Shown here: one piece after another, positions 8,527-61,503 of the stretch
Numbering within the stretch: position 1 is the stretch's first letter
How the letters are laid out: every line of letters starts with the position of its first letter
Assembly: GCA_001643675.2 (NCBI GenBank)
Contig: LSRY02000015.1
Span: 930,001 to 994,000 of the forward strand
Length of the DNA: 64,000 bases
Origin: Monocercomonoides exilis PA203
Taxonomy: Eukaryota; Protista; Preaxostyla
Direction of reading: 5' to 3'
Notes under the pieces: generated by a model
Seen by the model: the letters and a program-made list of their open reading frames with translations, nothing else
Database searches by the model: none
Told to the model about the DNA's origin: nothing
Translations under genes and position numbers: made by a program

Positions 8527-10647
8527 TTACTGCTTTGAGACTGGCTCAAACTGCTGATACAATTTTCCCAATCCCACCGACAAGCCGATGTATTTTGAGA
8601 ATGAAGCGTGTTCGCGCACCCACTGTTGTGTTGCAGGAGAACCATATTTGTACATATTGATAAGGATTCCGAGACCAACCTTGTAAACATTCAGATCAGA
8701 ATGCCTAATAATTGAGAGGAAGAAGAAGAAGAAGAAGAAGAAGGGAAGAATTGTGAGTTAATAAAAACAAAAATTGAGTTTATATGAAAATAAAAATCAA
8801 TGTTTATCAAAGAAAATAATAGCAAATCAAACTCCAAATATCCCAGAATGACTTTGTCAAATCCATCGCTCAACAGCAGCTTGTGATTCTGCTCACACAT
8901 AAACAGCCCACTCAGCCCTCTAAGCGCATCATTTCTTTCATATTCACTCAAAGTTCTGTCTTCAATATCAATTTTCAGCTGCTTCACCGCTGGAACGTAT
9001 TCACTCGTGATCGGCTCAGCTGACTGAATCTGCATCAGCAGCTGCATCGATCTGATCCTCAGCTCATTCAACTCCACATCGTTGCCAATCAGATCCTTGA
9101 TGATATAAAGCAAAAACGTCTGCGCATAGAAGTAGTTCATAATCTGCCAGAAGCAGAACTTCCCTGTCTTCTCTCCCACGCACCCTTCGACGGCTTTGCT
9201 CAGTACAAGCAGCCCGTTCACACAGTCCTTGTTGACTGCCCAGCCGTACCTGTCCAGCCCACAGCAGAACGCCTGCACCACATTCGCCTCCAGAATCTGC
9301 TGCAGCAGCTCTCCCCGCCTGTCTGTCGCATGCTGCCCGATGCGGCACACGTTGAACAGAAGGCGGAAGGACCACATATCCACATTGGGGAAGGCGTGTG
9401 TGTGAGGAAGAGAAGTCAAAGAGGCTGCGACGGCGGGGATGCCGCTGCTCAGCACCTCTCTGAGAGACACGAAGCACTTGTACATGAGCGTATTCACCAG
9501 CTTCATGCACGTGTTGATGATGCGGCAGACAAGCGGTGCTGGCTCAGGGATGCGGGGAAGTGTGGCTGTTGGGGAGAGAACGGCAATTGCGGCAGTTGGA
9601 GAAGAGGAAGAGGGAGAGGTGGACGATGAGGCAGAGAGAGAAGATGCGTTTGTGGGAATAACAGGGAGATTCTTCACTCCCATTGAGGATGGATCTTCCT
9701 CTCTTTCTCTCTGCTTTTTCCCTTTTCTTTTTGGCTTGGCTTTTGCTGGAGCTGCAGCTTTTTCTTTTTCCATTCTTTCCTTTTCGGCCTTTTCTTTTTC
9801 AATTTTCTCTTCCTCTTCCTCTTCTTTTTTGGTCTTTGCTTCAAATCCAAAAGGTACCTTTGGCAATGGTGGTACAAATCGCTTCAATGTGCTCGCAACG
9901 CCTTTAAGCAATCCTTTGTTCAACAACCACTGAATAATTGCAGCTGGCTGTGTCATAATAGCTTGATCCAGAATGCCCAATGCAGTATCCACATCTTTTG
10001 CTGGAGCCTGAGGAAGGCTAAGAGCTTCGAGACATCTCTGAGGCGGCCATTGTTTTTTCAATTCGTCTTTCATCTCAAACACAGGGAAAGACAAACGATC
10101 GGCTATAGTTTTTTTGGGTGGGGTTAAATCTACTGGCCTTGGTATTGTTGGTCCTGGAACGTACAATGGAGTGTTAGAAATCGGAATAGCAGCATATGAT
10201 GGAGCATTTGCAGTCTTATGAGTTTTTTCAAAAGGCACGTATTGTCCAAATACAATTCCGCTTGCACAGAATGCAATATCATCTGAGTCATGACTGACAA
10301 ATTGAATGATGGATTTTTTGAGAGAAATCAGAGAAGGACGAAGAGAATCATTTTTCCACAATGCTTTTGTTAATTGAAGTAATTTAGAAATTTTCTGTTC
10401 TTCAGCTTTGCTTTCTTCAATAAGTTTTTTAAGTACTTTAATTCCATCCGACTTTTTGAGCATATTTAAATTGATTTCATTTGTGGCTATCAGATCGATC
10501 AATTTTTCAGATGCATTTGAAAATTCGTCTTGTTTCTATAATAATGCAAAAAGTGCGAAATTTCATAATATGCAACACATAACAAAGATGGCAAACTTGC
10601 AATTTATTAAGAAATTCACAAAATAATTCAGTTGTTTCTGAACTCAT
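8527..10647 (-). CDS. Armadillo/HEAT-like helical repeat protein, 3 exons
   Basis: Exon 1 MSSETTELFCEFLNKLQ|gtttgc splices in frame to the 603-aa ORF. The last intron (ga|gtttga...tag|g) gives the terminal exon HSDLNVYKVGLGILINMYKYGSPATQQWV...SKQ*. The leucine-rich amphipathic pattern suggests an ARM-like fold (inference). Confidence 0.6.
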
Positions 10648-10868
10648 TCCCTGTTCAATAAAAATAAGTCATCGATTAATTAAATCATCAAATAAAATAT
10701 AACATTAAAAAAGCAATTTGCTAAATGAAAATATTCATTAAAAAAATTTATTCACACTATTAATTAAAAGGAAAAATCTTTTTTCAAGATCATCAAAATA
10801 TTATTTGATTTTTTTCTTTAAAAAAAGAATGTTGTTCTTGTTCATATCATTTAATTCACACACTGTGC

Positions 10869-11276
10869 GGTATATTCACAGAGAACGGGGCAAAAAAATT
10901 TCAATGAAAAAAATAATAAAAAACACAGAAAAAAAGAGCTTTGGCAGGAGTCGAACCCCCGACCTTTGACCAACGGAATATCAATGGTCGAGGTAGCTAC
11001 CGCTTGCGCTACTCGAGCCAAAGCCCAGCTTTATTTACTTATGACTCAACTTAAACCTGGCTAAACCCTAACCCTAAAAATCCAAAAAAGATCAAGTTTT
11101 TTTGAGTGCTAACTCTAAAATGAAGAGCGGGAACATAACCCTAAACCCAAGATCTGTTACGCTAACCTTAAAACCTAAACCAATCAATTAATACAGTGAT
11201 TATTTTGGAATTTTTACCCTAAAAATAAAAAAATACTTGGTCAGATCAAAACTGCCCCGTTCTCTGTGAATATGCC
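10869..11276. mobile_element. Non-autonomous Merlin/IS1595-type MITE (408 bp) carrying a tRNA-like gene
   Basis: 24-bp TIRs: GGTATATTCACAGAGAACGGGGCA (10869-10892) versus 11253-11276, 1 mismatch. Perfect 8-bp TSD CACTGTGC at 10861-10868 and 11277-11284. GG termini plus an 8-bp TSD are Merlin hallmarks. Confidence 0.85.
10936..11026 (-). ncRNA. tRNA-like Pol III transcription unit (non-canonical cloverleaf)
   Basis: The minus strand has an A box TAGCGCAAGCGG (11000-11011), a B box GGTTCGACTCC (10947-10957), a 10-bp terminal stem GGGCTTTGGC/GCCAAAGCTC and a GACCA/TGGTC arm with a 12-nt loop. A T7 run (10929-10935) follows immediately. Confidence 0.7.
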
Positions 11277-11524
11277 CACTGTGCATTGCGTACAAAACAA
11301 AAAAGTTAAAAAGATTTTGTTAAAAAAATTCATGTAGCCGAGTATTTTTTCATATAAGCTGACGGCTCATCAACTGTTTTTCAGAAAATTTCTAATAAGA
11401 TTTATATTGTCAATGATTGTTTTTGTCAGTTGAAAATGAGCAAATTTTTATATTTCCGCAAAATAAAAACTTGTTCTCGATTAATGAAAAATGGGTGCCA
11501 GAATTTTCATTTTGTGAAAAATCA

Positions 11525-14076
11525 ATGTTTGATCGCTGGTCTCAGCAACAAGGACCTTCTATATTTCTTCCATCCCAAGGAACTGTCGAACCAAGAAGAA
11601 GAGTATTTTAATATTTGTTTTTAGATATGTTGCATTTAACATATGTTCTCGTAAATTTTTATAGATTCCGGGTCCAGCTGGAATGATTCTGACTGAGGAA
11701 CTCGAACAACCACAACAAGACGAAGTTGAAGAGCAAGAAGGTTCATTAGTCTTTTGCAGTTTGCTTTCAAAAAGATACAAATCAAAGCAACTTACTATAA
11801 AGAGAGACCTTGCTGTTCCTGAAAGAAGAAGAGTGCTTCAAGGACCTTGGAAGCGTATGTCAGATGCATATAAAGCAACGGAGGATGTTGTCGTTGCTGG
11901 TATGTTTGGTCAAAACGTGAAACATATTTTGGATGAAATGCCTGCTGATAAGCCAATTCCTCATCTTGCAGCAATGATAAAATCATTTGAAAGATCAGAA
12001 CTGTTCATACCTGGAGTAACAAATAGGCTTGCTTTGTTTTCTGATGCGACTGGAGAAATATTGGGAACTGTTCAATACTCTGTTATAACTGAACATTTTC
12101 CAAATTTTGTACCAAATGCAGTTGTAGTTTTGCGAGATGTACCAATATTTCATCGAACTAGATTTGGAAAACAGCTTCTTATCGGAACATCATGCATAGA
12201 AGCAATTTTTCCTCCATGGACAGAAGATCAAGCGAGACTTGAAGATCCAGAAAAACAACAAGAATCCTCAACATCTGCACAGCAGAGGCAGGAACAAGAG
12301 CAAGCAATTGAAGATCAAGAATATGATGAACGGGAATTTGGAAATTTAAATCAATCACATAGTTTTCCAGAAGAGCAATCTGTATCTAATCAACGCGAGA
12401 AAGAGAAACAAGTTGTTCATGGAAATACTCCTGAAGACATTGACATACTGGATGATCTTGACGAAGAAAGAAGAGAAGGAGATGAAGAACATGCTAGACA
12501 GGCACAAATCATTACAAGCGCTATTAGTTCGGCTTCTGAGTCATTGTTTGATACAAAAGTTACACCAAATGAACATCAATCACCTTTAACTCTCTCTGAA
12601 AGACAAGGCCAAGGAATAAATCAAAGAAAAAATGAAGATTCAGATGATTCTCAGAATGAAAATGAAAAGGAGCAGAAAAAGAATCCTGCAATTGAGAGGA
12701 AAAGTGACAATCAGCCTCAAAAAGAAATTTCGACATATGAAAATGTAGCGGATAAAAACAAAAAGCTAAAGCTAATGTTTCAACAATTTAAAGCAAACGA
12801 TAAAGCTTTGAAAGCTGATCTATCAAATCTCTCAAAAAAGAGGAGACTTGTTTCATTGGATGGGACAGATAATGAGAGGGAAAATGGTGAAGAGATAAAT
12901 AAACAGACAAATAAATCTAACTTGGATGAAGACACAACAATGCAAAAAGATGAAAATGATGACGAAGACGAAGACGAAGAAGCATTTTCACATCTAATTC
13001 CTCGATCCCCACTTATGAGGACTTCTCAGACAATCTCAACTACCCAATCTGATCAGAATTCTTCTTCTTCCTCATCCTCTTCGCTTTCCAATTCAAAATC
13101 TGTTGTTGATGATTTTTCATCGTTACAAACTTCATCACCATCATCAACTAACTCTATTTTTTCTTCTAATGTTCCAACTCCTCCATCTGGTTATTTCGCC
13201 TCTGTTGGCGATACATCTTCTTCTGCATTGTCATCATCATTAACACCTAACATTCCTTATTCTTCTGTTGGAAGCTCTCCACCAATGTTGCAACAGCCGG
13301 TGTCATCTTCTCCTTTGCGCTCTTCATCAAACACTGAGCCCTTAAATATTCTTGAATCATTTCGTTTTAATAGCAAGCATCCTGCCCCCAATAAAATCCA
13401 AAATACATCTCCTCCTTCATTTCATTTGATTATGAAAAACCCTCTTCAAAATCCAACTTCACCACAATTGGATTCTCTTCACACTCCTTCCTCTTCTTCT
13501 CCTCTTCCATTGACGTCTTCTTTGCTTCTGTCATCGACTCCTTCGCCTTCGCCTTCCAATGCACCATCTCATTTGCCTTCTCTTATATCAACCCCACCTT
13601 TCCAGTCAACAACTACTTCAAATCCTGATCCTCTTGAGTTGGCTGATTCGTCTCCTCTGGATAAGCTTGAAAGATTTCGAATGAATGCAGACAAATCAAA
13701 TAAGTCACCGCAGCATTTTTCTCCTCCTGTGAATCGTAATGCACCGTTTCCAGCCACTTTACCTCCTTACAACTCAAATGTTATCACTACACATGTTTAT
13801 AAGCCTAATATGAGCGTTAAAAGAGAAGATTCTGCAGTTGATTCTTCAAACAGCTTCTTAGAATCATTCGCTTACTCATCAAGCACTTCTTCAGAGCGTC
13901 TGTTTTCCAATGAAAATAAAAATTTCCAGGGTGCTACAAATTCTTTTTCTCAAGATTCATCAAGTCAACAACTTTCTTCTCAATTTTATTCACTGCCGCA
14001 ATTAACTCCACCAGGCAAACAAAAATCAGAGCTACAAGATATGGATTTACTAGACGATGAAGATGATGAAATGTGA
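11525..14076 (+). CDS. HROB: HROB/MCM8IP (C17orf53, DUF4539) OB-fold protein homologue, 2 exons
   Basis: Exon 11525-11602, intron 11603-11664, exon 11665-14076 give RRRIPGPAG...GPWKRM...IPHLAAMIKS...FSDATGEILGTVQYSVI...AVVVLRDVPIF...LLIGTSCIEAIFP. This matches the HROB motif order (IPGPAG; DPTGEMxGTxH; VLLLKxVxVF). A long disordered tail follows. Confidence 0.75.
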
Positions 14077-54600: not shown

Positions 54601-57600
54601 AGAATAGTCATTAAAATAATTTCGAATTAGTTTTTATTTATGATTTTTATCGAATTCTTCTGTGGGCAGTTGATCTCATATTTAATTGGAGAAGAGAATA
54701 ATTTATCAAACAATTTATCTTCCTTGTTCATTACACTCAACTGTTCTGCAAATAAGATGTCCATTCACAGAGAATAATCACATCAAAGAGTAATCGAAAG
54801 ATAACTGATTCAAGATTCTTTTTTTTAAATGCTATATTTTTTTTAGTATCCGTCCTTGTATTTTTAATATAAATTTCTTTTTTCAATAAGTGATTTTATT
54901 TTTATTGTTTGAATTCATATGTTTATTCAAATATCAGCGTGGAAACTGTTTCATGTGGTTAGAAATGGTAGTGAAAGGAATGAAGAAATACTTGCATTAT
55001 TTCAAGGAAAATAAAAAACTTTATGGATCTGTATTAAACAATAAAATAACATCCATAACTTTTCAACTTTCATTCACAGAAATAGTTCAAGAAGATTAAA
55101 AAGAAAAGATATTTTTTGACAAAACTTCGAAGAATGATATAGTTTGAAACATTCGAGGAATGATGTGAAAAAGAGCGTGAAAAATCATCAAAGAAAGATT
55201 ATTTTTAATAATTGAATAAAAAATTAATAATGAACAAAGCAAATTTTATTAGAAAATTATTTTTGTTAAAATTTTTTTATCACAATATCGAATTGCTTTT
55301 TTCCTAAAAACAATTCTCATTCAAGAAATTTTTCAAAATATATTTATCAACTGACAACACATGTTTGCTATTTTTTTCTGTTTATTCATTAATTCTTTTT
55401 CAAAAGAATTTTTGCAGTACAGAACAAGAATTAATTCATCCATTCATTTTATTATCTTCAAATGGTTTTTTTCGCATTGCTTTAATTAAAAATAATTTCT
55501 CCAAAAAAGTTAAAAATAATATAAATGAATGAAAGTGTTCGTTTTCTCAATGAAATATTAAAACATCATTGATGCCAAAGTCATATCAGTCCTGTTTTTA
55601 TGATTTTTTGATAAATCACGAAAACTTGCGGTATTTGGGATCAGAAATGGTCTCCCAAGTGAACTATCATTTTTTAATTGAGATTAATTATCAAAAAACG
55701 TAAATTTGGATATTGTCAAAGATGTGTTTTTTAAAAAAGAAAAAACCGACACTGAATAAAAAAAACTGACTGATAAAATAAAAAAGAATTTCAATTTGTT
55801 GGTTGTGCAATTTTTTGAAAATGAAAAATTCTCTCAATTAAAAATTTGTTGAGAACAACAGTTATCTTTTTAAGTTATCGTTGTGCACAATAAAATAATT
55901 TATGAATGTCAAATTTATCTTGAATTTTCAGCGCATGCTCCATGTATCATTCAATAAAGCGAATTCAAATTTTTTGAAAACAAAAAAACAAATTGTGTTT
56001 TTGTTCAAATTATTCACCTTATTTATTTAATTTTTCAAAAATGTTTCATATCTCAAAAATTCATTGATACAAAAGGTTAATATGAAAAATAAAAGCATTG
56101 CATGCATTTATCAATGTATGATAATCCTAGAATTTTTATTTAGTCAAAATATGTCAAATTTCTCGGTAATTTTTCAAAATTGATTTTTTTCTAGAGAAAG
56201 AAACAATTAAAAAAAAAAATTCGTCCACCCAAAAGGTTATATTTATATATATCGAATATTTGATCATTTTGCATATTGCAAACAACACAAGTTGCAAAAA
56301 AAATGGAGAAGGTTTTTATTCCAATATCATTTATCTGATTTTTCTCTTTTTTTTCATAGCATATTGAAGCTTTGATGAAAATTTTGTGAATATTTGTAGT
56401 CGGTTCAATTGTATTCCAACGTATGTTCATGAAAATTTAAAAGGAATTATTGGTACATAAGTTCCCTTGAAAAAATAATTATGCAATAAAACCAGAATGT
56501 TTGGAATCGCATCGCACCATTCGACATCTTTGAATATTCGATGTTTTGATAAACTTATTCGAAATGTTACAGATTGAATTTGAACCGGAAATTCTTGACA
56601 CAAATTTGAATGATAATTCTCAAAAAAACAAGTGCTGTTTGTATAATAGATAAAGAATGACTTCTGTTTTCATTATATTTATAACTCATCCAATTCCAAC
56701 AGCTTTTCTTTTCCGATCACGTCAAACTTTTTTCTCACGAATGAACATATATGGAACAAGCAGTGCCATCTTGTTGCAACAAAAGCAAGAACGGCCTTCT
56801 TCAGAATTGATCTGTATGTTTTCGTATGGGATCTTTCCGAAAATTCCAAAATAGAATATTTTATTTTCGAAAGAAATTTTGTCTTGCTGAATGATAAAAA
56901 AATAAATAAGTTCGTCAGTTTGCAACAGCAGCAAGTTAAAACAGGTTCTATTGTTGGAGTTACACTAAAAGAGGAAAGTTCAATAAAACTTTGTTGAATT
57001 AAATAATTAATAGCTTTTAATTGTGCTGCAAACCAATCTGTGCTAAAACTTCTTAAAATAGAAATAAAAAAAAAAAAAAAAAAAAAAAAAAAACTTTTGT
57101 TAATTTTTGAAATAAAAGCAAATAATCATCTGCTATGGGCGAGACATCACCTCCCTGAAAATGCAATATCGAAAAATCGGATATGTCAAACATTTCTTTA
57201 TGTTTTGCTACTGTTTTTAAAATTATTTGCAAATAGCGAATCTTCTTTTTTGTTTAAAAAAATATTTTTTAAGGAAAAAATTTATTATGGGCATTGATCA
57301 ATCGCGTAATTTGTTCATTTTCATTTCTCATTAAATAGTGAAAAGTTTTATTCAAATACCTCGGTTTGCATTTTAGATTTTGTTTCTGTTTCATGAAATA
57401 TTGCGTGCTTATTGAAATCTTTTTTAATTAACAAAAACAGTGACGTGATCTTCAAAGTTAACAATTCGAAGCAATGCTTTTAAATTAGTTACAAGCTAAG
57501 TCAAAACTGTATGTTATATTTTGTTATTATTAATATCTCTCTTTCATTTCATTAAATAATCTTTAATATTCATTATATTTTTGATAATAACTTGTGTGAT

Positions 57601-57660
57601 TTCAATTTTCTCTCATTATTGCATTGAATTGAAATCGCAAAGCGTATGCAAAGAAAGATG

Positions 57661-57820
57661 CTGGGGGAAGCAGCGCAAAGCAGGGGGAAGCTGGGGGAAG
57701 CTGGGGGAAGCTGGGGAAAGCAGTGCAAAGCTGGGGGAAGCTGAAGGAAGCTGGGGGAAGCAGTGCAAAACTGGGGGAAGCTGGGGGAAGCAGTGCAAAA
57801 CTGGGGGAAGCAGCGCAAAA
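57661..57820 (+). repeat. 16 x 10-bp G-tract minisatellite in the left arm of D
   Basis: CTGGGGGAAG units interspersed with CAG(T/C)GCAAA(G/A). Ten units carry G4-G5 runs. Confidence 0.9.
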
Positions 57821-58042
57821 TGATTTATAATGTAATTTTGACACATTAGTTGATTATTAGTCAATAAAAATGAAAATTGAGGAAATCGAGATGAGAGAAG
57901 TGAGAAGAGAGAAGAGAGAAGAGAGAAAGAAGACAAGAAGACAAAAAATGAATATATTGTTATAATTTGTTTTGCTTTTTTTAATTTATTGTTTTTTGTT
58001 AATAAATAAAAAATAAAACATTGAACAGCTCTTATTTTTTAT

Positions 58043-58936
58043 TTAATTATTTAATTTGATATTTGCAAAAATTGTTAAAAATTTAACAAATGAGTTGGCT
58101 GGATTTCTTTGAAATGTGAATGCATCCAAATATTCTTCCAAGTATTTTTTTCTGACTCCATAAGGAGGAAGATATTTTCTTAACAAACTCCACGTACTTT
58201 CAATTCGTTGAGTGTGAGCTTTAGTTATCGGATCAACAAATCTTTTGCTATGGTTGACTGTTTCGTGAAGATAATCCTTTTCGTTGATTCCGTTATAACC
58301 CTTCCAGCAATCTGTAAATATCTTTGTCTTTTTTGAAACATGCTCCTCGATTGATGAATGAAGAATTTCACGAGTTCTCTTTAAGACTGGCAATAAAAAA
58401 AGCTTTGATTTTTCTCCTTTTTTCTTTGGCCTCTCTATTCCACCCAATATCCAATTTTGCCTTTTCCCTCTTCCTCTATTGTATTTTCTCTTTGGGAAAA
58501 CGGCTTCATCAATTTCAACTTCAACATTTTCTCCTCCAATTTTTTCCTTATGTTTCTTTTTGTAGAGCGAAATTGTCTGTCTGAAATTTGCAAACATTTT
58601 GCTAACTGTAATTGGAGATTTTCCAGTGATAAAAGAACAATGTTTTTGAGACATTCCTGTCCAAAAACACAATGACATCAAACAAACACAAGAAATTCTC
58701 ATTTTGAATTGGCTAAAGTGGTTGTTGGCCTTAATGTTAATTTGTTTGTGTCTACAAACAAATCTTGTTGCATTATCTTCAAAAACATACAATTTCATAT
58801 TTCTTTTGCATTTCCAGCAATATTTGTTTTTTTCTAGTATCATATTCTCCAATAGCCAGTTGACTGTATCCTTTTCTGTTGAAAAGATTCGAAATAACTT
58901 CTTAAAGTATGTTCTCGATTCTTTTTGATTTTGCAT
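58043..58936 (-). CDS. Intact Merlin/ISXO2 DDE transposase (297 aa from the ATG at 58936)
   Basis: Uninterrupted ORF with CWKC zinc ribbon, IGGENVEVEIDEA, KRKYNRGR, WILGGIER, IFTDCWKGY, TVNHS and HTQRIESTW. The D-D-E triad is intact. Confidence 0.92.
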   Translation of the reverse strand: MQNQKESRTYFKKLFRIFSTEKDTVNWLLENMILEKNKYCWKCKRNMKLYVFEDNATRFVCRHKQINIKANNHFSQFKMRISCVCLMSLCFWTGMSQKHCSFITGKSPITVSKMFANFRQTISLYKKKHKEKIGGENVEVEIDEAVFPKRKYNRGRGKRQNWILGGIERPKKKGEKSKLFLLPVLKRTREILHSSIEEHVSKKTKIFTDCWKGYNGINEKDYLHETVNHSKRFVDPITKAHTQRIESTWSLLRKYLPPYGVRKKYLEEYLDAFTFQRNPANSFVKFLTIFANIKLNN

Positions 58937-59270
58937 AAGAAATATAAATTGATCAGCGTTTAAACAACAAAGCAAAAGTTATGGAAATCCAGCCAACTCA
59001 TTTGTTAAATTTTTAACAATTTTTGCAAATATCAAATTAAATAATTAAATAAAAAATAAGAGCTGTTCAATGTTTTATTTTTTATTTATTAACAAAAAAC
59101 AATAAATTAAAAAAAGCAAAACAAATTATAACAATATATTCATTTTTTGTCTTCTTGTCTTCTTTCTCTCTTCTCTCTTCTCTCTTCTCACTTCTCTCAT
59201 CTCGATTTCCTCAATTTTCATTTTTATTGACTAATAATCAACTAATGTGTCAAAATTACATTATAAATCA

Positions 59271-59430
59271 TTTTGCGCTGCTTCCCCCAGTTTTGCACTG
59301 CTTCCCCCAGCTTCCCCCAGTTTTGCACTGCTTCCCCCAGCTTCCTTCAGCTTCCCCCAGCTTTGCACTGCTTTCCCCAGCTTCCCCCAGCTTCCCCCAG
59401 CTTCCCCCTGCTTTGCGCTGCTTCCCCCAG
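59271..59430 (-). repeat. Mirror copy of the 10-bp G-tract minisatellite in the right arm of D
   Basis: Reverse complement of 57661-57820. Confidence 0.9.
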
Positions 59431-61503
59431 CATCTTTCTTTGCATACGCTTTGCGATTTCAATTCAATGCAATAATGAGAGAAAATTGAAATCACACAAG
59501 TTATTATCAAAAATATAATGAATATTAAAGATTATTTAATGAAATGAAAGAGAGATATTAATAATAACAAAATATAACATACAGTTTTGACTTAGCTTGT
59601 AACTAATTTAAAAGCATTGCTTCGAATTGTTAACTTTGAAGATCACGTCACTGTTTTTGTTAATTAAAAAAGATTTCAATAAGCACGCAATATTTCATGA
59701 AACAGAAACAAAATCTAAAATGCAAACCGAGGTATTTGAATAAAACTTTTCACTATTTAATGAGAAATGAAAATGAACAAATTACGCGATTGATCAATGC
59801 CCATAATAAATTTTTTCCTTAAAAAATATTTTTTTAAACAAAAAAGAAGATTCGCTATTTGCAAATAATTTTAAAAACAGTAGCAAAACATAAAGAAATG
59901 TTTGACATATCCGATTTTTCGATATTGCATTTTCAGGGAGGTGATATCTCGCCCTGCTATGTAACATGGAGGAAAAATTACCCCCCCCGCACCCAAAAAA
60001 AAAAAAAAAAGGATTGATAATAAAGATAATTGACAAATAGTTACAACTGTATACTGTTTATGGGCTACAGATGCACCGTCAACCATTTCACATAATCCAC
60101 AATTCGTAATATTTGTCTTTCGTTCCTTTTCCACTTTTGCTTTTTCTTTCAAGACTGAATTTGATACCTTTCTCCTTGTTAAATATGAAAAAATAGATTC
60201 TGTGTTTGCTGTGGAATAGGCTTGTCCAGCTCGAATAAGTGATGAATAAAATACATTTGATTCTTTTGATGAAGCTGATAAAAACGAAATATTGCATTTT
60301 GTGATCATCGAAACAAATTGCGTTTCTAACGTCTCGTGTATCGGTATTGATGGAGATATGTGATTGTTTTGTTGAGAAACTGAATAATTATTGCTCGCAG
60401 CTTGTCTAATTAGAGTTGTAATAAAGTGAGTTTTTAGTAATTCGCATTTGAAACTCACAATTGAATAATGCTTTTTCTATCGCATATTCCATAGCTAATT
60501 CCATCTTTGCAAACTGGACAAAGATTATATCGGTGAAAATGTTTTTTGCTTGCAAAGTCTTCTACAACTTTTACCAATGTGATTCACAAATAATTATTGC
60601 AGTTAATGAACGCTATTTTTGAAATGAAATTGTTCTTTTTAATTGGATTCTCGTTAACAAAAAGAAATTTTGTTTCAATTCAATTGTTTATAATATATAA
60701 AATGTATAAAATGAAAAGCAAAACCTGTGTCAAATTTTGTTTCACAACGCTTTGAAATATTCATGAATTGCGGATTCGTTTCATTTAACTGTCCGAACTT
60801 GTCTTCATATGCTTTTGCTTGAAAAAAATAATGTTATTAATAATCGAAAAAATCATAGGAAAAAAACAACAACAAATAATGAATTTGATAAAGAAATTTT
60901 CAACTCATAAACAAGTTTGGCTTTCTTTTCATCACATATATTTTTTCAACTTGACAGTGAATTTCACTGACTTCACTGACAGTCAGTAGATCATAAAATT
61001 CCATTAAAGACTTCAGTGTCAGAAGCGCATGAACAGTCAATTTTGTTAAATGAAAAATAGTCAATTTGGAACAAAATATTTGAGTTCACGCATTTTCATA
61101 GAAAAATAATACATCTTCGATGAACTTTTTGTGATCAAAAATTAAAAAAAAAAGTTTATTTTTTGAAATACATGTGACATCACAAAACAATTTGTGATCA
61201 CATCAATAACGTTTGTTTGCAGTTATGAAAATCTTATTAATTTTGAAATTAGATAAAGATTAATAATGTAATAAGTGAAACAAATATTTCACGCTTTGTG
61301 CATAATAAGCTTGAAAGTCCTTATTATGCTTCATGAAAAAATTTCTCTTGAAAAATTAAATATTTCAAAAAGTTCACTTAAAAAATTTATTATTAATGGA
61401 AACGTAAAATCAGTTAGTTTTCATTTATTTATTTATTTTATTTTGGGCAATAAAGAATTTTTATATGTTCAAATATTTCCATTTTATTGTGTTGTCAAAT
61501 ATT

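Follow-up and report, generated by a model that had tools for sequence, protein, structure and literature searches.

A 64-kb stretch of the genome of Monocercomonoides exilis (hereafter the window; G000:C9:930001-994000 of an 82.3-Mb assembly in 101 contigs) contains, at positions 10869-11276, a 408-bp miniature inverted-repeat transposable element (MITE) whose sequence identifies it as a non-autonomous Merlin transposon, and this element carries on its minus strand a 91-nt unit with the signals of a tRNA-derived RNA polymerase III (Pol III) gene. In our assessment, the MITE probably spreads through the genome a tRNA-derived Pol III-type gene, or docking site, on which Pol III factors would assemble wherever the element lands, and the Merlin clade to which the element belongs probably maintains this unit. 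The evidence comes from an autonomous Merlin partner with the same termini, from the exclusive occurrence of the unit within Merlin terminal inverted repeats (TIRs), from homologous units at the same place in diverged Merlin families, and from the repeated insertion of tRNA-homing transposons at the 5' edge of the unit. Mobile units derived from tRNAs are normally retroposed short interspersed elements (SINEs), and a Pol III-type gene that is spread as DNA by Merlin would represent an unusual cargo.

The Merlin element, its cargo and their relatives

Members of the Merlin superfamily are marked by a DDE transposase of the IS1016/IS1595 type, by a target-site duplication (TSD) of 8-9 bp, and by TIRs that typically start with GG; the superfamily was reportedly described by Feschotte in 2004. 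The element of the window is bordered by 24-bp TIRs, whose outer ends read GGTATA and GGCATA, and by an exact 8-bp TSD (Table 1). An autonomous copy of the same family (referred to here as family 1) is present at G000:C10:32740-34247 (L081:1017-2524). It comprises 1,508 bp, possesses TIRs identical to those of the MITE, is flanked by the TSD TAACATAA, and contains an intact open reading frame (ORF) of 355 amino acids that matches the DDE_Tnp_IS1595 domain (PF12762) with 86.7 bits at a cut-off of 27; the database relatives of this transposase all carry PF12762 as well. A second autonomous-type copy of family 1 is located in C21, and a profile search with PF12762 yielded at least 150 Merlin-type transposase matches in the genome. 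What the MITE has in common with the autonomous copy is limited to 43 bp at its start and 194 bp at its end. The transposase type, the 8-bp TSD and the TIRs beginning with GG are those of Merlin, while the 408-bp length, the lack of coding sequence, the presence of TIRs and TSD, the multiple copies, and the autonomous relative that is alike at its ends only are those of a MITE.

Full-length copies of the MITE (407-410 bp) occur at least nine times in the genome with sequence identities of 89-100%; one further copy is 75% identical and several are split, so that family 1 totals about 19 copies. Exact 8-bp TSDs, all of them different from one another, flank nine MITE copies and two copies that bear insertions, and nearly all of the 39 genome-wide matches to the TIR are arranged as inverted pairs. 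When the unit alone was used as the query, each of the 18 genomic matches fell within a copy of the family (18/18), one of them a relic in C51 whose TIR has been retained. The whole-genome search detected no unit outside Merlin TIRs, and neither a poly-A or simple-repeat tail nor a TSD belonging to the unit itself was found. The unit is present in all copies, including the autonomous ones, in which it is positioned on the transposase strand (215 bp past the stop codon in the C10 copy). Hence, what the initial annotation had proposed from the window alone, namely a Merlin-type element with 24-bp TIRs and an exact 8-bp TSD that serves as a cut-and-paste vehicle for a Pol III-type unit, is supported by the autonomous Merlin copy, by the many copies with distinct TSDs, and by the restriction of the unit to Merlin TIRs. 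Its concern that the unit might be single-copy, or might occur by itself with its own TSD or poly-A tail, has been allayed by these data.

One MITE copy is found twice in C30 (603818-604224 and 610247-610653). The two are inverted, lie 6 kb apart and possess identical flanks and the same TSD; the identical flanks indicate a segmental inverted duplication and not two insertions.

The unit (positions 10936-11026, minus strand) extends from GGGCTTTGG to CCAAAGCTC and is directly followed by a run of seven T residues. Its B box, GGTTCGACTCC (positions 10947-10957), conforms exactly to the pattern GGTTCGANNCC and is the single match to this pattern in the window; taken alone, a B box is within chance expectation, which amounts to 3.3 matches in 64 kb when one mismatch is allowed. 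An A-box-like motif, TAGCGCAAGCGG, is positioned 54 nt upstream of the B box (positions 11000-11011). At the level of its sequence, the unit thus displays an A box, a B box, the spacing between them, and the oligo-T run of a type-2 Pol III gene. The copies in the alignment of family-1 units retain the T-run, which in some of the older ones is broken at one or two points. A terminal stem of 10 bp can be drawn between positions 11017-11026 and 10936-10945, as can a 9-bp stem with one bulge in the D-region; the minimum free energy (MFE) fold of the unit is a rod and not a cloverleaf (-38.4 kcal/mol; z-score -3.4). The Pol III signals, the terminal stem and the D-region stem listed in the initial annotation were recovered, and its description of the fold as tRNA-like but non-canonical agrees with the predicted rod and with the failure of tRNA search programs to report a tRNA, to which we return below.

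We aligned the unit locally with 25 tRNAs of the host. The highest scores were obtained with tRNA-Trp (37), tRNA-Pro-CGG (36), and tRNA-Thr and tRNA-Lys (35 each), while the maximum reached by shuffled sequences averaged 25.4 +/- 3.3. Most of the likeness falls in the D-arm/A-box and T-arm/B-box regions. None of the 25 aligned tRNAs stands out as the parent, and no host tRNA with the T-arm and acceptor of the unit was found in the genome when up to two mismatches were permitted. These alignments mark the unit as a tRNA derivative; it is rearranged and has lost the cloverleaf. Its best match in Rfam is Vault RNA (RF00006), but with a score of 12.2 bits (E 3.3) it stays below the gathering threshold of 34, and we do not count it among the Vault RNAs; some small nucleolar RNAs also matched, all of them below threshold. 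What the unit has in common with Vault RNA and other Pol III RNAs of about 90 nt is its length, the panhandle formed by the terminal stem, the A and B boxes, and the oligo-T end.

Units of this kind are not limited to family 1. Family 2 is a MITE of 394 bp with the TIR GGCATGATTTAAGAAAGGTGGGCA and 8-bp TSDs, represented by L026:1325-1718 (G000:C47:385369-385762) and about ten copies. Its unit of about 86-90 nt is strongly diverged from that of family 1 and has the same position and orientation. The B box of this unit reads GGTTCGAACCC, and an A-box-like motif precedes it by 53 nt; the terminal stem comprises 10 bp, six T residues follow the unit, and the MFE amounts to -43.3 kcal/mol (z-score -5.7). 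A search with the TIR pattern found no autonomous family-2 element, and the family-2 copy in C34 holds a 3.1-kb insert without a transposase ORF. Family 3 (about ten copies) is represented by an autonomous element of about 1.49 kb with the TSD AGTTTCAT and a 271-amino-acid ORF containing PF12762 within L078 (G000:C1:756568-759951). The family-3 unit (L078:925-1002, minus strand) lies downstream of the transposase gene on the same strand, and it too folds with a terminal stem of 10 bp.

Across the genome, the sequence block GTTGG..GTC...GGTTCGA..CC is confined to the units of families 1 and 2, and these two units align with a score of 50, compared with 24 +/- 4.7 for shuffled sequences. Since the alignment exceeds the shuffles and the block is exclusive to them, the units are homologous and were not captured separately. 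The TIRs of the two families are identical at 14 of 24 positions (about 58%), and the terminal stems are unlike in sequence; both stems nevertheless measure 10 bp, and B box and T-run are kept. Homologous units at one and the same place in three diverged families suggest that this Merlin clade maintains the unit.

Homing transposons at tRNA genes and at the unit

The genome of M. exilis contains more than 100 relatives of a 389-amino-acid DDE_Tnp_4 protein encoded by Harbinger-like transposons, and at 8 of the 30 loci of this kind that were examined with ARAGORN a genuine tRNA gene is present. The elements are about 2.35 kb long, have TIRs of the form (AC)TAGAAC...GTTCTA(GT) and a 3-bp TSD, and end 3-12 nt upstream of genes for tRNA-Val, Gly, Tyr, Ala, Arg, Thr, and Phe. 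Head-to-tail stacks are frequent, and the tRNA-Pro gene at the end of a stack in C22 shows the same arrangement.

Harbinger-like elements adjoining tRNA genes are found in L048, L050, L059, L061, L064, L066, and L068 (G000 contigs C12, C34, C37, C21, C22, and C1), and stacks are present at G000:C22:113-126 kb and C62:192-236 kb. Pogo-like elements, which possess a DDE_1 transposase and TIRs starting with TAGTCGGGGAGG, abut the Harbinger-like ones. The tRNA gene at L050:398-483 is reported as tRNA-Ser(AGA) by ARAGORN in its bacterial mode, whereas its sequence corresponds to a tRNA-Tyr(GTA) gene whose anticodon is followed by an 11-nt intron.

The same types of transposons are inserted at the unit. 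Six family-1 copies (C19, C43, C13, C91, C41, and C21) are interrupted at MITE positions 152-165, which correspond to the 5' edge of the unit. The inserts in C19 and C43 are 3.2-kb Harbinger-like elements, with a mutual identity of 88%, that encode the 389-amino-acid DDE_Tnp_4 protein; C13 contains a different element of 969 bp, C91 an element of 5.3 kb, C41 a pogo-like element with a DDE_1 transposase, and C21 a 994-bp element whose end matches that of an element adjoining a tRNA-Phe gene. At least five independent events have therefore affected the approximately 19 copies of family 1. Family 2 has been hit at the unit's 5' edge in three of about ten copies: C37 carries a Harbinger-like insert with a clean 3-bp TSD (AAT), C38 a pogo-like insert, and C45 a stack of which two ends were read, resembling pogo-like and Harbinger-like termini. 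In family 3, again in three of about ten copies, the insert is pogo-like (C8) or Harbinger-like with the TSD AAT (C17 and C14). Together, the three families present 12 loci with an insertion no more than about 15 nt from the 5' edge of the unit, corresponding to at least 11 independent events when C19 and C43 are counted once. Breaks elsewhere in the elements number two, one near position 295 of the family-1 copy C6, the nature of which was left unexamined, and one near position 250 of the family-2 copy C34. In a rough calculation that takes a 15-nt window out of 400 bp of element, this clustering exceeds chance by many orders of magnitude.

These insertions at 11 or 12 loci provide indirect in vivo support for the portable Pol III/TFIIIC site that the unit is proposed to constitute. 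We infer that a host complex on the unit, be it TFIIIB, TFIIIC, or Pol III itself, would most simply account for the attraction of two superfamilies that are unrelated to each other; should such a complex be assembled there, occupancy and transcription of the unit would be probable. The units of about 80-90 nt, which possess A and B boxes, a terminal stem and a terminator, amount to a natural experiment, as they are targeted without a cloverleaf or a recognizable tRNA identity and in arbitrary chromosomal contexts. For this reason, the homing elements probably read Pol III factors and not the tRNA sequence or its neighborhood, and the unit offers itself as a compact candidate target for studies of the mechanism of tRNA homing.

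Proposed mechanism and competing explanations

The following course of events would account for our observations. The Merlin transposase would act in trans on the MITE, moving it and generating 8-bp TSDs. The unit of about 91 nt, situated about 60 bp inside one TIR, keeps its type-2 Pol III signals without the cloverleaf, and TFIIIC and TFIIIB, probably along with Pol III, would assemble on it at each new site. One consequence is seen in the insertions described above: every new copy becomes a landing pad on which the Harbinger-like and pogo-like transposons that home to tRNA genes can settle. As the most likely benefit, an occupied Pol III site might keep the chromatin around the neighboring terminus or promoter open and insulated. 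We tentatively entertain, as a possibility and with less than even confidence, that the Merlin clade keeps a Pol III gene of its own as a working module through selection acting on the transposon in at least three families, with the unit serving either as a chromatin opener or insulator that is bound by TFIIIC/TFIIIB beside the terminus or as the source of a regulatory or decoy RNA of about 90 nt, and with mobile landing pads, by which tRNA-homing transposons would reach new chromosomal sites, arising as a side effect. Composites of a Merlin vehicle and a Harbinger passenger may move together.

The distribution of sequence variation bears on the maintenance of the unit by the clade. Among the six youngest copies of family 1, 2 of the 91 sites in the unit are variable, compared with 34 of 269 elsewhere in the element (Fisher p 0.002), which makes the unit about as invariant as the TIRs. 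A constrained source lineage from which individually unconstrained insertions are derived is expected to yield such conserved young copies next to decaying old ones.

Several observations weigh against a maintained, portable Pol III gene. The excess of conservation in the unit comes from six copies only, and in the old copies C58, C53, and C2 the B box has been lost at the neutral rate, which implies that the host does not preserve individual copies. Nowhere in the window does ARAGORN call a tRNA, and the Rfam model for tRNA (RF00005) does not match the unit at E-values up to 10, even with 116 nt searched; the cloverleaf by which tRNA finders and covariance models recognize a functional tRNA gene is thus not seen. 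In family 1, two to three compensatory pairs were detected for both a cloverleaf-like fold and the MFE rod, a number within the range of the controls. No B box was found in four other Merlin loci or in both Merlin copies of the window, and the 2.1-kb Logan contig of P0011, the nearest foreign Merlin relative (41% identity), likewise shows neither a B box nor a unit. As these other Merlins lack it, the unit is not needed for Merlin transposition in general and has to be viewed as a feature of one clade. Finally, the homing elements could read DNA motifs directly and not bound Pol III factors.

Some of these observations would be equally at home with a neutral passenger. In this scenario, a tRNA gene or a fragment of it was captured once by an ancestral Merlin and attracts homing transposons through its remaining likeness to a tRNA gene, without being of use to either Merlin or the host. 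It would be consistent with the confinement of the unit to one Merlin clade, with the free decay of old copies, with the disappearance of the cloverleaf, and with family-1 compensatory pairs that stay within the control range. We nonetheless judge it less likely, because a passenger of this type would not be expected to keep its position and orientation, its B box, its terminal pairing, and its T-run in three families whose TIRs are only about 58% identical. Nor would it be expected that the MITE has retained 194 bp of the unit-bearing end of the autonomous element and just 43 bp of the other, or that young copies vary so much less within the unit than outside of it.

An improbable alternative assigns the unit a function in the formation of the 3' end of the transposase mRNA. 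RNase P or RNase Z would cut Pol II read-through transcripts at the tRNA-like fold, for which the mascRNA of MALAT1 provides a model, and the MITEs would merely have inherited this signal. The position of the unit downstream of the transposase gene and on the same strand in families 1 and 3 would suit such a function, but a fold without a cloverleaf would be a poor substrate for RNase P or RNase Z, and neither the B box and T-run, its best-kept parts, nor the conservation of the unit in non-coding MITEs would be explained.

Long versions of the element of 3.6 kb, found in C19 and C43, have the TIRs and TSDs of the MITE around the DDE_Tnp_4 ORF, and could on this basis be mistaken for the autonomous form of a PIF/Harbinger-like element with the 389-amino-acid protein as the transposase of the MITE. 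We consider this very improbable. The ORF resides within a nested element that has TIRs of its own (AGAAC...GTTCT), its relatives at about 50% identity adjoin real tRNA genes without Merlin ends, close copies of the transposase gene are located outside of any MITE, and the TSD of the MITE measures 8 bp, as in Merlin, in contrast to the 3-bp TSD of the nested elements. With the nested element recognized and the true autonomous Merlin copy at hand, we rejected DDE_Tnp_4 as the transposase of the MITE; neither a 3-bp TSD of the MITE nor a DDE_Tnp_4 element with the termini of the MITE, which would characterize it as PIF/Harbinger, was found. An ordinary tRNA-derived SINE that landed in a MITE, to which the tRNA-like head with its A and B boxes might point, can be dismissed, because the unit is never free-standing: all copies lie within Merlin TIRs, lack a tail and a TSD of their own, and occupy a fixed position in every copy and in three families.

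Relation to known systems and genomic setting

The elements described here agree with Merlin transposons and their MITEs in the IS1595-type transposase, the 8-bp TSDs, the GG ends, and in that the short derivatives match the autonomous copy at the termini only; they differ in that the present clade carries a putative tRNA-derived Pol III-type gene beside one TIR. Our literature search, whose coverage was incomplete and which does not prove novelty, found neither a Merlin nor a MITE with a Pol III gene. With tRNA-derived SINEs, the unit has in common that a tRNA-derived sequence with A and B boxes is spread by a mobile element. SINEs, however, are reverse-transcribed, with 3' tails, variable TSDs, and no TIRs, whereas the present unit moves as DNA, between TIRs, with fixed 8-bp TSDs, and never alone. 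Pack-MULEs, Helitrons, and transduplicating hAT elements likewise hold host-derived sequences between the termini of a DNA transposon; their cargo consists of protein-coding fragments that differ from copy to copy, in contrast to the small Pol III-type gene that is kept here in three families.

Reviews of Pol III-targeted elements cover retrotransposons such as Ty3 and TRE5-A (PMC5911963). Targeting beside, and not inside, tRNA genes was known for retrotransposons, while the Dada DNA transposons insert inside tRNA and snRNA genes (PMC3706591). The Harbinger-like and pogo-like elements of M. exilis resemble Ty3 in that their insertions lie just a few bases upstream of the gene, prefer one orientation and form stacks; in contrast to Ty3 and TRE5-A, they are cut-and-paste transposons, and in contrast to Dada, their insertions adjoin tRNA genes of many identities and do not fall at one intragenic sequence. 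A Harbinger-type homing to tRNA genes was not found in our search of the literature, again with incomplete coverage. The present finding differs from all of these Pol III-targeted elements in that it concerns the target and not the homing element.

The features of the MITE are compiled in Table 1. The element occupies a gap of about 1.2 kb that separates two long ORFs, at positions 8691-10502 (minus strand) and 11683-14076 (plus strand), the latter of which encodes a protein with an HROB domain; the G+C content of the window is 32%. Public databases list the proteins encoded by these repeats under the name Monocercomonoides exilis.

Table 1. Coordinates of the Merlin MITE and its parts in the 64-kb window
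Feature	Position	Strand	Remark
Left TSD copy CACTGTGC	10861-10868		Exact direct repeat with 11277-11284
Left TIR GGTATATTCACAGAGAACGGGGCA	10869-10892	+	24 nt, 96% complementary to 11253-11276
T7 run, Pol III terminator-like, directed at left TIR	10929-10935	-	Read from sequence
91-nt unit, tRNA-derived and of Pol III type	10936-11026	-	A-box-like motif, B box, terminal stem
Few bases upstream of the unit	11027-11040	-	Empty in the window copy; insertion site in other copies
Internal non-coding region with telomere-like CCCTAA motifs	11063-11257		Common to the second MITE family, 82-87% identity
Right TIR	11253-11276	-	Pairs with left TIR
Right TSD copy CACTGTGC	11277-11284		Exact match to left copy

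The internal CCCTAA-rich region of the MITE is not present in the autonomous copy of family 1. In this region, a telomere-like, telo-box-like motif, TTAGGGTTAGGG (positions 11063-11080, in minus-strand sense), is located about 25-50 nt upstream of the unit. The MITEs of both family 1 and family 2 possess this motif, as does the autonomous element of family 3, whereas the autonomous copy of family 1 lacks it; the motif might act in an upstream promoter or insulator, or might reflect no more than common ancestry. Pieces of 150 nt from the CCCTAA-rich region also occur, with 83-86% identity, at G000:C24:302158-302318, C56:147444-147604, and C56:149712-149872. They are situated in other repeats, about 0.4-6 kb from genes for tRNA-Glu and tRNA-Gln, and may belong to a homing element.

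A larger Merlin element of the window spans approximately positions 57137-59954. It starts with GG, is flanked by the 8-bp TSD CTGCTATG, and has TIRs of 971 bp that are 100% identical to each other and surround the transposase region.

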